Assembly (NCBI RefSeq): GCF_006345805.1
Contig: NC_043026.1
Coordinates: 9,920,001 to 9,984,000 of the forward strand
Length of the DNA stretch: 64,000 nt
Reading direction: 5' to 3'
DNA from: Octopus sinensis
Lineage: Eukaryota
Below the pieces are notes generated by a model, which ran no database searches, was not told where the DNA came from, and saw nothing but the letters and a program-made list of their open reading frames with translations. A program made the position numbers and the translations under genes. This document shows, one piece after another, positions 34,452 to 47,123 of the stretch (position 1 is the first letter of the stretch; the number at the start of each line of letters is the position of its first letter).

Positions 34452-34645
34452 CCGGAGAGACGCATGCGCATTGAACTTACTTCCAGCTTCCTCTCGATAT
34501 CCAATTAATTGTCCCGTGCATGAATTTCTCTTAATTAGCTGTAAATCCAATTATGATATCTATAATACGTACTTATACCGCATTCTCAACCACCAGATGC
34601 ACACATATATAACCACACTATCCTTTAAGAAACATTTCCGTAAGT
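34452..34645 (+). promoter_or_regulatory. ZNF6 promoter and exon 1 module (motif 34459-34470; donor at 34640)
   Basis: GACGCATGCGCA ... CATTTCC|GTAAGTATTAA followed by ZNF-type intron start; no other such module before the acceptor at 45851. Confidence 0.7.
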
Positions 34646-34776
34646 ATTAAACAATGAAGATATTCTATGTTTTTAATTCTGTAGACGTTCGGTTTTTTGC
34701 AGGTGCTCCCTTCTGTGGTTTATGAGCGAAAGATGTCCTTGATTTGGTTGCTATTTCTAACTTTCGAAGACAGATA

Positions 34777-35400
34777 CAGTGTCGCCAACTTAAAATCACG
34801 GTTTTATGCTAAATTTCAGTAGAAAAAAATACAAAAAAAAAATGCTAAAGAATAATTATATCAAAAAGCTTAATTTTTAATTTACATTTTTATTTACCTT
34901 CTTTAATTATATTCAGCATTGAAAAATAATTTCTTGAATTTCACTGATTTAATCACTTTGGGTTGCAGTGCTTAGGTCTTCACTTCTGTATACATTTAAG
35001 GTCCCAATCTTGTTAATTATGTTGTGTTTTGGGATATCGAAGCAGTCGCAACCTTTGCCATATCTTTTCAGGCCGTACTTTTAAAGACAGTATTGATCTA
35101 AGCATAGGAAGATGCATTTTGTTTTTCAATTTTGATTTGATTACGCCCATACTACTGAACAACCGTTCAACTTCTGCATTTGAGTTTGGCAATGTCAATA
35201 GATTAATGGCAAAATTTGCAACATCGCTAAAAGGATTTCCTCCGGTAGCATCTTTATTTTCCAAGAATTCTAGCCAGAATGCCTCAGTAGTAGATGTATT
35301 TGTCCATTTAACTAAATGAATGCTATTAAACTGAATTTCAATTGGAGCAATTTTTTCTTCATTTAAATGCTTAAATTGCTTCTAATTACCTCTCAATTCA
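34777..35400 (-). mobile_element. hAT transposon 3' end (TIR plus dimerisation-domain coding remnant), copy 1
   Basis: TIR-like CAGTGTCGCCAAC at 34777; ORF 35013..35264 LLTLPNSNAEVERLFSSMG (hATC-type motif). Confidence 0.85.
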
Positions 35401-35548
35401 TCAATGTTTATTCTTGTTTGATCTGTCATGAAAATTGTAGGTCCTGCGACTCTCTATATTATCATATGACCTACTGGAAATAACAGCACATTTCCCTTAA
35501 ATTTTTCCTATGGGTCGTGAATATTGACGACTGCATTGGGTGATGTAC

Positions 35549-36900
35549 CACTTTTTTTTGTGAGTGTCACTGTAATATATGATAAAATTTCCTATCGACT
35601 TGTTTATCCATGGATATCCATGGATTCATCTAATAACAGGCTAAATTTTCAATCTCCTATATCAGAAATCAAATCTCCATCAAAATATGGAGCTAGACCA
35701 TTTCTCACAATATTTGCACATTTTGTACGATGCAACTTCACTTTGGATATAATATCACCATCAGACATATAATTCTTACATAATTCTAATAAGTGATCCC
35801 TCGAGCCGGAGCTGAACAGACGGATTGGGAAGGCTGCTGCTGCCATGGCTAAGCTCTCCAGGAGAGTGTGGGAAAACAACATGCTCACAATAACCACCAA
35901 GATCGCAGTGTACCGAGCCTGCGTGCTGAGCACCCTACTCTACGGCAGCGAGAGCTGGACAACATACACCCGGCAAGAATGCCGCCTCAGCGGCTTCCAC
36001 ATGCGGTGTCTTCGACGGATCCTTGGCATCTCCTGGAAGGACCGAGTACCAAACGGAGTCATCCTAGAACAGACTAATATGCCAAGCATGCATGCCCTCC
36101 TCATGCGGAGACGACTGCGCTGGCTCGGACACGTCTGCCGCATGCAGGACGGTCGCATGCCTAAAGACATCCTGTACAGCGAACTCACCACGGGATCCCG
36201 ACCCAAGGGACGTCCACAGCTACGATACAGGGATGTGTGCAAGCGCGACCTGAGGACTGCCAACATCTGTGTGGACACGTGGGAGGAAACAGCTGCTGAC
36301 CGCTCTGCCTGGCGTCGGACAGTGAGGAAAGGCGTTTCCATGGCTGAGGAAAGGAGGGCACAGCTGTGGTCGGACAGGCGGGACAGGAGGAGGACAACTG
36401 CAGCAACACCCCACACGTACCCATCGATGTTCGTGTGCAGCAACTGTACCAGGGGCTGCCACTCTAGAATTGGACTGTTCAGTCACAGCAGACGCTGCTC
36501 ATCATCAAAGTAGGCCCCACCCTTGGCGCGACCCATTGTCTATCAAGACAGACGGGGGAGAAGAGAGAGAAGAGAAGATCAAAGTTATTAAATGATGAAT
36601 GGCAACAAATAAACATTGCTAAATTCGCTTCAGGCATAGATGTCTTATCATTTTTGCTGTAAAGTTGATGTCTTATGTTTCTTTGCCTCACAGTGGCTTA
36701 CTAAAAGAGAATATTTTGCAAGCATATTACATCTACAATATCTGCAATGTACTTCACACAACCACTTAGTAAACGCTGGTATCTTAAGCCATTCCTTTCA
36801 GAATTTTTGCTGGTACAACTTTGTTTTTTCTTTGCTCGTTATAATATAGTGGGAAGTAAGAATATAAATTGAATGATGAATAAAAAATATAAAATTGAAA
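35549..36900 (-). mobile_element. hAT transposase N-terminal half (zinc-finger region to first catalytic Asp), split by an RTE insertion
   Basis: Minus strand QQKF*KEWL...WL...HCRYC...H...KH. Removing 35799-36590 restores CHSSFNNFDHLLELC...KLHRTKC...FSLLLDES. Confidence 0.8.
35799..36590 (+). mobile_element. RTE-clade LINE 3' fragment
   Basis: ORF 35845..36513 LLYGSESW...LRWLGHVCRM...CSNCTRGCHSRIGLFSH; (GA)-rich tail; GATC on both sides. Confidence 0.92.
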
Positions 36901-44062: not shown

Positions 44063-44813
44063 GCGCAGGAGTGGCTGTGTGGTAAGTAGCTTGCTAACCA
44101 ACCACATGGTTCCGGGTTCAGTCCCACTGCGTGGCATCTTGGGCAAGTGTCTTCTGCTATAGCCCCGGGCCAACCAATGCCTTGTGAGTGGATTTGGTAG
44201 ACGGAAACTGAAAGAAGCCTGTTGTATATATGTATATATATATGTATGTGTTTGTGTGTCTGTGTTTGTCCCCCTAGCATTGCTTGACAACTGATGCTGG
44301 TGTGTTTATGTCCCCGTTACTTATTCTTTGTAAGTCCAGTACTTATTCTATCGGTCTCTTTTGCCGAACCGCTAAGTAACGGGGACATAAACACACCAGC
44401 ATCGGTTGTCAAGCAATGCTAGGGGGACAAACACAGACACACAAAAGAGTAAAAGAGTAATGTCAAGTTCTCTTTCTGGAGAAGGACTAATGTTAGTCTC
44501 CACTATTCTGTAGTTTTATTTTCAAACTGTTACACAATGCGCAGGAGTGGATGTGTGGTAAGTAGCTTGTTTACCAACCACATGGTTCCGGGTTCAGTCC
44601 CACTGCGTGGCATCTTGGGCAAGTGTTTTCTGCTATAGCTCCGGGCCAACCAATGCCTTGTGAGTGGATTTGGTAGACGGAAACTGAAAGAAGCCTGTCG
44701 TATATATGTATATATATATATATGTGTGTGTGTGTATGTGTTTGTCCCCCTAGCATTGCTTGACAACCGATGCTGGTGTGTTTACGTCCCCGTCACTTAG
44801 CGGTTCGGCAAAA
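44063..44813 (+). mobile_element. Two SINE-A copies within a local tandem duplication of ZNF6 intron sequence
   Basis: Same flank CTGTTACACAAT|GCGCAGGAGTGG at 44063 and 44539. Confidence 0.85.
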
Positions 44814-45112
44814 GTGGTGAAAAGCACTTGTGGCCATTCCTCATAAAAGTGCCCATGCAGTGCCACATATAAACACCTTGCACGTTGTGAAGGGGTCGGT
44901 ACTAGGAAGGGCATCCAGTTGAAATGATGACAAATGTGACTGAAGTCTGCTGCAGCTCCCCAGCACTGGTCAAAACATCCAACCCATTCCAGCATGGACA
45001 ACAGACATTATAAGATGATGATGATGAACTGAACATCCTAATTTACCAAAATTTACATCACAGACTCCTGTTTGAAGTTGACATATTTATAAACTACAGC
45101 GACACCATCACA

Positions 45113-45529
45113 TTACTCTCTCTTTTACTGTTTTTACTTGTTTCAGTCATTTGACTGCGGCCATGCTGGAGCACCGCCTTTAGTCGAGCAAATCAACCCC
45201 GAGACTTATTCTTTGTAAGTCCAGTACTTATTCTATCGGTCTCTTTTGCCGAACCGCTAAGTGACGGGGACGTAAACACGCCAGCATCGGTTGTCAAGCA
45301 ATGCTAGGGGGACAGACACACAAACACACACACATACAAATACACATATATATGTATACATATATATGACAGGCTTCTTTCAGTTTCCGTCTACCAAATC
45401 CACTCACAAGGCATTGGTTGGCCCGGAGCTATAGCAGAAAACACTTGCCCAAGATGCCACGCAGTGGGACTGAACCCGGAACCATGTGGTTGGTAAGCAA
45501 GCTACTTACCACACAGCCACTCCAGCGCC
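45113..45529 (-). mobile_element. SINE-A
   Basis: Full reverse-complement copy from CTCTTTTA tail to CTCCAGCGCC head. Confidence 0.9.
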
Positions 45530-46325
45530 TATTGTTGTTTAAATCCAGGATGAGTTTTAATACCTCTTTTATGAAGTGCGGATCTTCTTCAGTACATCAA
45601 GTCTCCAAAAATCTCATTCCTTCGTCATCTCATCTAAAAGGTTCTTCAGTATTTCGTCCCATGTTCTTCTGGGTGTCCCACTACCACATGTTCAATCCAC
45701 TTTCAGTGATTGACACTTCTTTATGGAGCTGTTGACATACAGCTCAGTTCTTAGGTTAAATGTTTATTTCTACAGTTTATCTCAATAGAAATGAATCTGT
45801 ATATTTTAAGTAGCCTCTACATCTTACACTGTTGTTTCTCTATAATTTCAGAACATCAGATGACATTGACATAACAGAAGAAGCATCCTTAATCTCTACT
45901 ATATTTTAAAGACTAAAGGAAACTATTATACGAAACATATGTATCAGATTGTTTCTACAAATCAGTCATAGAATCCCTGTGAAGTATTTGCTCTGAAATA
46001 ATATCATTAGCCAAGTTTCTGGACATCCCTGACTGGAGTGTCAAGAAGAGGAGCCTGTGTACTAATTAAAGTTGGATTTAATTAATGAAAGTGTTGCTAA
46101 AGAAGGGTAACAACTGGACAGAAATACAGCAGAAGAAGTGTTTGTAAGAAATAAAGTACAAGAAGAAAAGGAAGGAAAATGTATAAACTTGGATTTGAGA
46201 GGAAAAGTAATGGAAAAGAGTGAGAAAATTATAGAATTGATTTCCTCTCAACACATGGTAAAAGAGATAGGGTCATATGACTGACATCTGTACAAAGTCC
46301 TTCTTTCAAAGAATATAACCTAATT

Positions 46326-47123
46326 ATGCACAAACGTATTCATACAGGAGAGAAATCATATCACTGTGATATCTGTGGTAAAGTGTTTTCTCATAATAGT
46401 GTTTTAACTGCACATAAACGTATCCATACAGGAGAGAAACCATATCATTGTGATATTTGTGGTATATCATTCTCTGTAAGAGGTACATTGACTAGACACA
46501 AAAATATTCATACAGGAGAGAAACCATATCATTGTGATATCTGTGGTAAAACATTCTCTCAAAGTAGTAATTTAATGAAACACAAACTTATTCATACAGG
46601 AGAAAAGCCATACCATTGCAATATTTGTGGTAAATCATTCTCTAACAGTAGTCACTTATCTACACACACACGTATCCATACTGGAGAGAAACCGTATCAT
46701 TGTGATATCTGTGGTAAATCATTCTCTCAAAATGGTGATGTTACAAAACACAAATATATTCATACAGGAGAGAAATCATATCTTTGTGATGTCTGTGGTA
46801 AATCATTCTCTAACAGTAGTCACTTATCTAGACATAAACATATTCATACCGGAGAGAAACCATATCATTGTGATATTTGTGGTAAATCATTCTTTCAAAA
46901 TTCTGGCTTAACGCAACATAAATATATTCACACAGGGGAGAAACCATATCATTGTGATATCTGTGGTGAATCATTCTCTCAAAATGGTAGCTTAACGAAA
47001 CACAAATATATTCATACAGGTGAGAAACCATATCACTGTGAGATCTGTGGTAAATCATTCTCTCAAAATGGTAACTTAGTGAAACACAAATATATTCATA
47101 CAAAGAAGAAAGGAAAAAGGTAG
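46326..47123 (+). CDS. ZNF6: C2H2 zinc-finger protein, 9 intact fingers; ancestral start (46210) is out of frame
   Basis: ORF 46326..47123. The leader MEKSEKIIELIS from 46210 hits TGA at 46282-46284 through a 2-nt loss in finger 1; acceptor 45851. May be a pseudogene. Confidence 0.7.

Follow-up and report, generated by a model that had tools for sequence, protein, structure and literature searches.

Protein-coding genes that lie on the same strand within an intron of another gene are common in Drosophila and mammals, where they are usually transcribed independently of their host. Other intronic copies have recruited 5' exons or promoters from the host gene, as in TRIM5-CypA of primates, jingwei of Drosophila, and the intronic retrocopies of mammals. 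Octopus genomes, for their part, reportedly contain expanded clusters of C2H2 zinc-finger (ZNF) genes. The window analyzed here, a 64,000-nt stretch of Octopus sinensis chromosome 30 (C30; 9,920,001-9,984,000), brings these themes together: it holds a tandem C2H2 ZNF cluster, and one member of that cluster (ZNF6) carries an effector caspase gene in its first intron. Because the caspase carries the promoter of its own family, the locus most likely represents a conventional nested gene on the strand of its host, transcribed from that promoter and probably made by dispersed duplication at the DNA level. Unless another chromosome or species is named, coordinates are window positions.

Like other nested animal genes, the caspase appears complete, with its own promoter and poly(A) signal, and occupies an intron and the strand of its host. 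It departs from them in two respects: (i) the guest is a recent DNA-level duplicate of a tandem-array gene and is accompanied by a 776-bp target duplication; and (ii) the host is frameshifted near its N-terminus. As in the TRIM5-CypA and jingwei type of chimera, the copy is intronic, in sense orientation, and 3' of a host exon that is non-coding and ends in a strong donor; therefore, the geometry permits exon capture. However, the known guests of that type are promoter-less retrocopies, whereas the caspase still has ~900 bp of its upstream region, in which a promoter block is conserved. The surrounding genes conform to the octopus C2H2 clusters, being tandem multi-finger genes in which ~1.4-2.9 kb of intron separates a short, non-coding exon 1 from a single large coding exon. 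ZNF6, on the other hand, has an 11.2-kb intron with a foreign gene inside it and a broken canonical open reading frame (ORF). A further comparison can be made with read-through (conjoined) transcripts, as a paralogous locus of O. vulgaris has an annotated model in which a caspase is joined to a ZNF gene. That locus is arranged in tandem (caspase 5' of the ZNF promoter), whereas the caspase of the window is nested and has lost the splice donor concerned.

The caspase (39034-39903, + strand) is an intact, intronless coding sequence (CDS) of 289 amino acids (aa), situated downstream of the host donor and upstream of the host acceptor, on the ZNF6 strand. This bears out the initial annotation, which had reported an intact caspase within the ZNF6 intron and whose coordinates for the promoter motif, donors, acceptors and ORFs are all correct. 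The Peptidase_C14 domain (PF00656) is matched over its full length (E 3.6e-52; residues 36-274 on profile positions 1-232 of 233), and the best solved structures are human caspase-7 and caspase-3 (E 7.5e-46). In the alignment with human caspase-7, the His of the SHG motif, the Cys of QACRG, and the two S1 arginines all coincide with their counterparts. The prodomain is short (35 residues before the domain), and a Pfam search of the 289 residues gave no match to CARD, DED, or any other domain. By inspection of the caspase-7 alignment, an Asp is present in the intersubunit linker (ERND/A). The octopus copy thus resembles caspases-3 and -7 (Peptidase C14A) in its prodomain, p20/p10 layout, catalytic and S1 residues, and linker Asp, but differs from them in being intronless and in belonging to an octopus-specific family of tandemly arrayed copies. 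It also differs in the wall of the S2/S4 pockets, where the Trp of SWR is replaced by Met (SMR); for this reason its specificity may differ from the DEVD type. The first AATAAA past the stop codon (40421-40426, + strand) is the likely poly(A) signal.

Upstream of the CDS, the best-conserved stretch is a 29-bp block, TGGATTTCGnnAACGCATGCGCATT (38941-38969, + strand), which includes a promoter motif at 38957-38966. When eleven upstream regions of the family were aligned, mean pairwise identity among paralogues was 0.84-0.90 in this block and 0.48-0.62 further upstream. Restricting the comparison to four distinct lineages gave 0.84 for the block, 0.48 upstream of it, and 0.67 for the first 20 codons. 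Of 11 close paralogues, 9 have the motif block, among them members of a caspase-only array, 60 kb in length (C30:13.105-13.165 Mb), that contains no zinc-finger linker sequence. The exact octamer GCATGCGC lies ~40-100 bp 5' of the ATG, on the gene strand, in 9 of the 15 closest paralogues, while a second upstream block, ATATAnCATACCnGGAAC, is common to all eleven aligned regions. A genomic contig from another sequencing run also retains the promoter motif, ~80 bp 5' of the caspase ATG. Conservation of this kind among paralogues favors what the initial annotation had offered as its fallback, namely that the nested caspase is transcribed independently, from a CGCATGCGCA motif of its own.

The CGCATGCGCA motif itself is found seven times on the + strand of the window (2769, 10092, 15528, 24424, 33105, 34461, and 38957; 0.04 expected). 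Its extended 14-mer form, ACGCATGCGCATTG, has 194 genome copies, spread over all chromosomes, versus 6 for the reversed control, and six of these fall within the window (2768, 10091, 15527, 24423, 33104, and 34460). Judging by this distribution, ACGCATGCGCATTG is probably a general octopus core-promoter element; we take both forms to be NRF1-like from their resemblance to the vertebrate GCGCATGCGC site. As the element is genome-wide, its occurrence in both ZNF and caspase promoters implies no link between the two.

A six-frame search recovered ~30 full-length, single-frame (intronless) caspase-3/7-like copies in the genome, with arrays at C30:13.11-13.15 Mb, C19:12.33-12.41 Mb, C5:16.04-16.19 Mb, and C26:15.12-15.16 Mb, and on scaffolds C6349, C11409, and C2731. 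Exon-sized matches resembling conventional multi-exon caspases were found as well. Orthologues of the intronless family are carried by O. bimaculoides and O. vulgaris. A search of the literature found no paper describing either a caspase expansion or intronless caspases in octopus, and the window copy is one more member of this little-described family of effector caspases. The phylogenetic tree groups the window copy with its O. vulgaris orthologue, to which it is 99% identical, and places the pair as sister to the two caspases of scaffold C11409, C11409a and C11409b (support 95/95), of which C11409b is the nearest paralogue (83% aa identity). The likely co-orthologues in O. bimaculoides are two genes. 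Synonymous divergence (dS) is 0.17 to C11409a, 0.26-0.30 to O. bimaculoides, and ~0.02 between O. sinensis and O. vulgaris. On the strength of these distances, the duplication is placed after the split from O. bimaculoides and before that between O. sinensis and O. vulgaris. Scaffold C11409 is unplaced, 44 kb long, and contains ZNF genes in addition to its two caspases. The C11409-type copies of O. vulgaris share a chromosome with the orthologous locus and are 3.36 Mb away from it, which matches the distance between the window and the C30 array in O. sinensis. Because of this synteny, the probable place of the scaffold is on chromosome 30, close to the caspase array and ~3.3 Mb from the window.

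The limits of the duplicated unit follow from DNA homology. The core caspase unit (38133-40384, + strand), as defined with paralogues and with the O. bimaculoides co-orthologues, comprises the upstream region, a GA-rich tract (38345-38757), the promoter, the CDS, and the 3' untranslated region (UTR). Homology with the O. bimaculoides genes stops at 40384; homology with C11409b runs from ~38.1 kb through the GA-rich tract, promoter, and CDS and on through 1.05 kb of 3' flank to 40954, restarts at 42531, and fades by ~42600. Therefore, the whole gene unit was copied as DNA and not as a processed retrocopy. A retrogene is further ruled out by the co-duplication of ~900 bp upstream and of over 1 kb of sequence 3' of the likely poly(A) site, by the length of the flanking duplication (776 bp), and by the duplication boundary, at which no poly(A) tract was found. 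The interruption between 40955 and 42530 (+ strand) is a later 1.6-kb insertion that C11409b lacks; direct repeats of 82 bp (40873-40954 and 42449-42530) flank it. Its 174-codon open frame (40925-41449) had no Pfam match and may resemble an IS1595/Merlin-type transposase.

The caspase-bearing insert is bracketed by two copies of a direct repeat. Block A (34772-35547, + strand; 776 bp) consists of a 610-bp dispersed non-autonomous transposable element (TE; 34777-35385) followed by 160 bp that belong to the ZNF intron and have a homologue in the Z3 intron. The TE part has at least 40 genome copies (84-90% identity), which cover query positions 6-614. Block A' (42655-43897, + strand) is 95-98% identical to A and carries a later insertion of ~430 bp (43225-43651) that resembles a miniature inverted-repeat transposable element (MITE) or short interspersed nuclear element (SINE) and has an apparent 8-bp target duplication. 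Since only the first 610 bp are TE and the repeat ends in 160 bp of ordinary ZNF-intron sequence, A and A' are neither long terminal repeats nor the ends of a simple composite transposon. A young and abundant long interspersed nuclear element (LINE), 5'-truncated to the C-terminal tail of its reverse transcriptase, is located between A and the caspase (35797-36570, + strand); at least 40 copies share its boundaries, at 97-99% identity. Carriage of the caspase by 3' transduction from this LINE was considered and rejected, as the LINE is a separate young insertion with family-typical boundaries and single-copy flanks.

The following course of events best explains these features. The whole caspase unit would have been copied as DNA from an array ~3.3 Mb away on chromosome 30, taking with it ~900 bp of upstream sequence, the NRF1-like core promoter, the intronless CDS, and a 3' UTR of ~520 nt, and would have been inserted into the first intron of ZNF6. 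The 776-bp direct target duplication could then be the footprint of a replication template-switch (duplication-insertion), as opposed to transposition or retroposition. For the resident gene, we infer transcription independent of ZNF6, with a start site shortly 3' of the motif at 38957, a 5' UTR of ~50-70 nt, and polyadenylation near 40.43 kb. The host keeps its promoter, exon 1, and splice sites, while its canonical ORF is frameshifted and a nine-finger ORF with an internal ATG is left. If correct, this makes the locus a clean and datable example of a tandem-array gene seeding a new locus, in which a promoter-bearing copy came to rest ~3 Mb away in the intron of another gene, bracketed by a long target duplication. 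Such a result has no bearing on a long-standing question, and its interest would rise only with real exon sharing between the ZNF gene and the caspase.

The arrangement is not an artifact of assembly. The initial annotation had called for a check of synteny and had named misassembly as a possible refutation; an independent assembly of O. vulgaris is collinear with the window from 30.6 to 50.5 kb at 96-98% identity. Because collinearity extends throughout this interval, misassembly is ruled out and the nested locus is real.

ZNF6 has the features that define a member of the local cluster: an exon-1 module, an acceptor module, and tandem C2H2 fingers. On the + strand, CC/GTAAGT donors at 2943, 10246, 15709, 24605, and 34640 lie 170-180 nt 3' of five of the CGCATGCGCA sites, and TTTCAG/AACATC acceptors are found at 5004, 13106, 18539, 25963, and 45851, with two more on the - strand. 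The five motif-to-donor modules align with one another to beyond the donor and therefore represent a paralogous non-coding exon 1; likewise, the ZNF genes can be aligned around their acceptors and over the 5' portion of exon 2. The pairing of donors and acceptors in the initial annotation is upheld by these alignments. A motif scan of 34.6-45.9 kb found no further exon-1 or acceptor module, so that 34640/45851 is the sole ZNF6 pair, as had been proposed. By module homology, the parts of ZNF6 are accordingly the CGCATGCGCA palindrome of its promoter module (34461-34470, + strand), a putative non-coding exon 1 (34471-34639, + strand; homologous to four sibling modules), intron 1 (GTAAGT...TTTCAG; 34640-45851, + strand), and exon 2 (45852-47123, + strand), which is identified by its acceptor module, exon-2 homology, and C2H2 fingers. 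Intron 1 measures 11,212 bp, 4-8 times the 1.4-2.9 kb of the sibling ZNF genes. Sequence homologous to ZNF introns occurs within or across the edge of it at 34580-34697, 35396-35547, 43755-44001, and 45643-45851. Homology at both ends of the intron had been noted earlier and is real, but the portions at 35.40-35.55 and 43.74-43.90 kb are one duplicated 776-bp block. Much of 44.0-45.5 kb is interspersed repeat common to the Z2 and Z3 introns.

The readings weighed below are not all mutually exclusive with nesting or with one another. The first concerns the condition of the host. ZNF6 had been described as lacking its normal start; instead, the family-type ATG is retained at 46210, and the defect is a 2-bp deletion that leads to a TGA (46282-46284) after 24 codons and leaves no open frame from the family MEKSEKS start into the fingers. 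Damage to the N-terminus of ZNF6 is thereby confirmed. The same deletion and frameshift are found in O. vulgaris, in which an 11-bp deletion has also removed the ATG. What is left is a 265-aa ORF (46326-47123) that begins at an internal ATG, contains nine complete fingers (16-24 in the sibling genes), and is open in both species. Together with an intron that is TE-filled as well as overlong, these losses make it possible, though doubtful, that ZNF6 is dead or dying and no longer productively transcribed or spliced, in which case the intron would be historical and the caspase effectively intergenic among ZNF relics. On the other side of the balance, the ZNF6 motif and exon 1 (34441-34639) are identical at 199 of 199 positions in the two species, the donor and acceptor are intact in both, and the finger ORF is still open. 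The ratio of nonsynonymous to synonymous differences (pN/pS) of that ORF between O. sinensis and O. vulgaris is 0.36, which might be taken as a sign of function. This ratio is unreliable, because the ORF (46326-47123 versus 17194-17991 of the orthologous stretch, L021) differs at 43 of 798 positions (5.4%; pS 0.11), 4.5 times the rate of the flanking non-coding DNA (~1.2%). The excess suggests that the fingers turn over very rapidly or that gene conversion has acted among finger repeats or paralogues.

Several observations weigh against an independently transcribed caspase, and some of them speak for a link to ZNF6. Exact-protein look-ups with two O. sinensis forms (289 and 259 aa) and one from O. 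vulgaris (289 aa) returned no transcript contig on record. Logan contigs of related caspases, tried as transcripts, turned out to be genomic and not mRNA. The O. vulgaris authors' model of the orthologue begins at Met31 even though Met1 is intact; this could reflect a spliced leader that bypasses Met1, or equally the choice of the predictor. The words "isoform X1" in the name of the same O. vulgaris protein were discarded as a hint of splicing, as the record is an author submission (CAI...) whose name was apparently copied from the best hit. In both species, the caspase frame is free of stops for 70 codons 5' of its ATG, compared with ~21 in paralogues. ZNF6 exon 1 contains an ATG at 34597 that is open to the donor (phase 1) and would be in frame with the caspase through an acceptor ending at either 38926 or 39007; it is specific to ZNF6, the sibling modules having GATAC where this gene and its O. 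vulgaris counterpart have GATGC. Since the split of the two species, the caspase CDS has accumulated 5 differences in 870 positions, against 1.2% in the flanks (p = 0.11); the comparison is underpowered, and purifying selection over that interval was therefore set aside as a claim. Finally, at the paralogous O. vulgaris locus (OX597841.1, 6.35-6.38 Mb; stretch L030), model CAI9742745.1 (315 aa) joins a caspase CDS to a downstream ZNF gene on the same strand. Its path (positions 10848/10849, 16722-16781, and 18786) leads from a donor, AG/GTAAAA, that overlaps the caspase stop to an acceptor within ZNF exon 1, and from the ZNF donor to the exon-2 acceptor. Because this model joins both genes, caspase-ZNF joint transcripts may occur in the family.

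The initial annotation had favored a shared first exon with alternative last exons, or the capture of a ZNF promoter by the caspase. Under this scheme, ZNF6 exon 1 would be spliced to an acceptor before or within the caspase ORF, and one promoter would serve transcripts that end at the caspase poly(A) site or in ZNF6. Same-strand nesting, an intact and fully conserved exon-1 module and donor, the in-frame ATG at 34597, the Met31 start, and the joined model at the paralogous locus are all compatible with it, and a reasonable pyrimidine-rich acceptor, TTTCACTTTCAG, lies ahead of the caspase (38915-38926, + strand). The second candidate, AATTTCAG (39000-39007, + strand), falls in the presumed 5' UTR. 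The AGs do end where they had been placed, at 38926 and 39007, but such sites are no more than expected by chance and are poorly conserved: among 10 paralogues only C11409b keeps the first AG and two have the second, which is found in 3 of 11 sequences. The + strand of the window has 42 occurrences of TTTCAG, and 11 other pyrimidine-rich YAG sites lie between the donor at 34640 and 38926 (twelve such sites between the donor and caspase codon 31). By these counts, 38926 and 39007 are not special among the acceptor-like sites of the intron. In addition, site 38926 is upstream of the caspase promoter motif, and two upstream ORFs in exon 1, with ATGs at 34520 and 34553, precede the ATG at 34597. 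A guest that depended on the host exon would be expected to have no promoter of its own and a conserved acceptor before its ORF; here, the conserved block at 38941-38969 is shared across the family and moved with the gene, and the candidate AGs vary among its relatives. The shared exon is thus unsupported and, as the source of a substantial isoform, unlikely. Less probable still is its most specific form, in which ZNF6 exon 1 spliced to 38927 or 39008 would yield, from the ZNF-cluster promoter, a procaspase with an N-terminal extension of 23 or 50 residues. Were it true, a single promoter would give rise to either a death protease or a truncated transcription factor.

The caspase might instead be a recent duplicate that was stranded here and is silent, its ORF surviving only for want of time to decay. 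No O. sinensis protein from the locus is present in the protein database, although the database may omit such records; conservation between the two species is not significantly above that of the flanks; and the ratio of nonsynonymous to synonymous substitution rates (dN/dS) of ~0.5 indicates relaxed constraint. However, this ratio is still below 1 (25 synonymous and 59 nonsynonymous changes versus 17 and 67 predicted under neutrality), and the ORF, catalytic residues, and promoter block are intact despite a dS of 0.17 since the duplication. The O. vulgaris annotators also called the orthologue a gene. Silence of the copy is improbable on this evidence, a little more so than exon sharing.

In the paralogues, the caspase stop codon and an overlapping splice donor are contained in GGTAAAA; in the window copy and its O. 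vulgaris orthologue (39868-39903), this sequence has become ACGAAGA, and therefore both the stop and the donor are gone and ten C-terminal codons have been added. The reverse linkage, in which transcripts from the caspase promoter extend past the gene and are spliced to the acceptor of ZNF6 exon 2, placing ZNF6 under that promoter, would have its precedent in the donor-over-stop path of CAI9742745.1, but is very improbable for a copy that has lost this donor, whose O. vulgaris orthologue is annotated with a normal stop, and which is followed by AATAAA at 40421.

The ordinary nested gene is therefore retained as the likely account of the locus, and the remaining observations concern its repeats and surroundings. 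A second ZNF exon-1 module (33077-33668, + strand; motif at 33105) lies 1.36 kb upstream of that of ZNF6 and aligns with it only to ~33191, being truncated by a mariner-type transposase fragment (33180-33668) whose ORF matches the HTH_48 domain of Mos1 transposase (E 5e-21). Upstream of the caspase unit, comparison of repeats within the window identified a tandem array of 4.9 x 197 bp (37147-38120, + strand); we take the 197-bp unit to be tRNA-derived SINE sequence. This array and the LINE together make up a large part of what is left of the insert. Arrays of this unit are also located at 2255-2618, 8631-9681, 15319-15442, 23918-24155, 32082-33005, and 62887-63838. Every ZNF exon-1 module on the + strand is preceded, at a distance of 90-410 bp, by such an array, always in the same orientation, and another lies beyond the minus-strand ZNF gene; the array upstream of the caspase is oriented opposite to those upstream of the ZNF genes. 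The ~430-bp MITE/SINE-like element of block A' recurs in ZNF introns (33767-34213, 43221-43659, 15909-16299, and 24811-25088, and at 3863-4268 of O. vulgaris L021) through repeated independent insertions, one of which is specific to O. vulgaris and lies ~60 bp from the A' insertion site. Elsewhere in the window, 50001-52000 is strongly G-skewed (GC skew 0.53), and long tandem repeats at 53238-55891 give rise to spurious open frames of 170-350 codons on the - strand.

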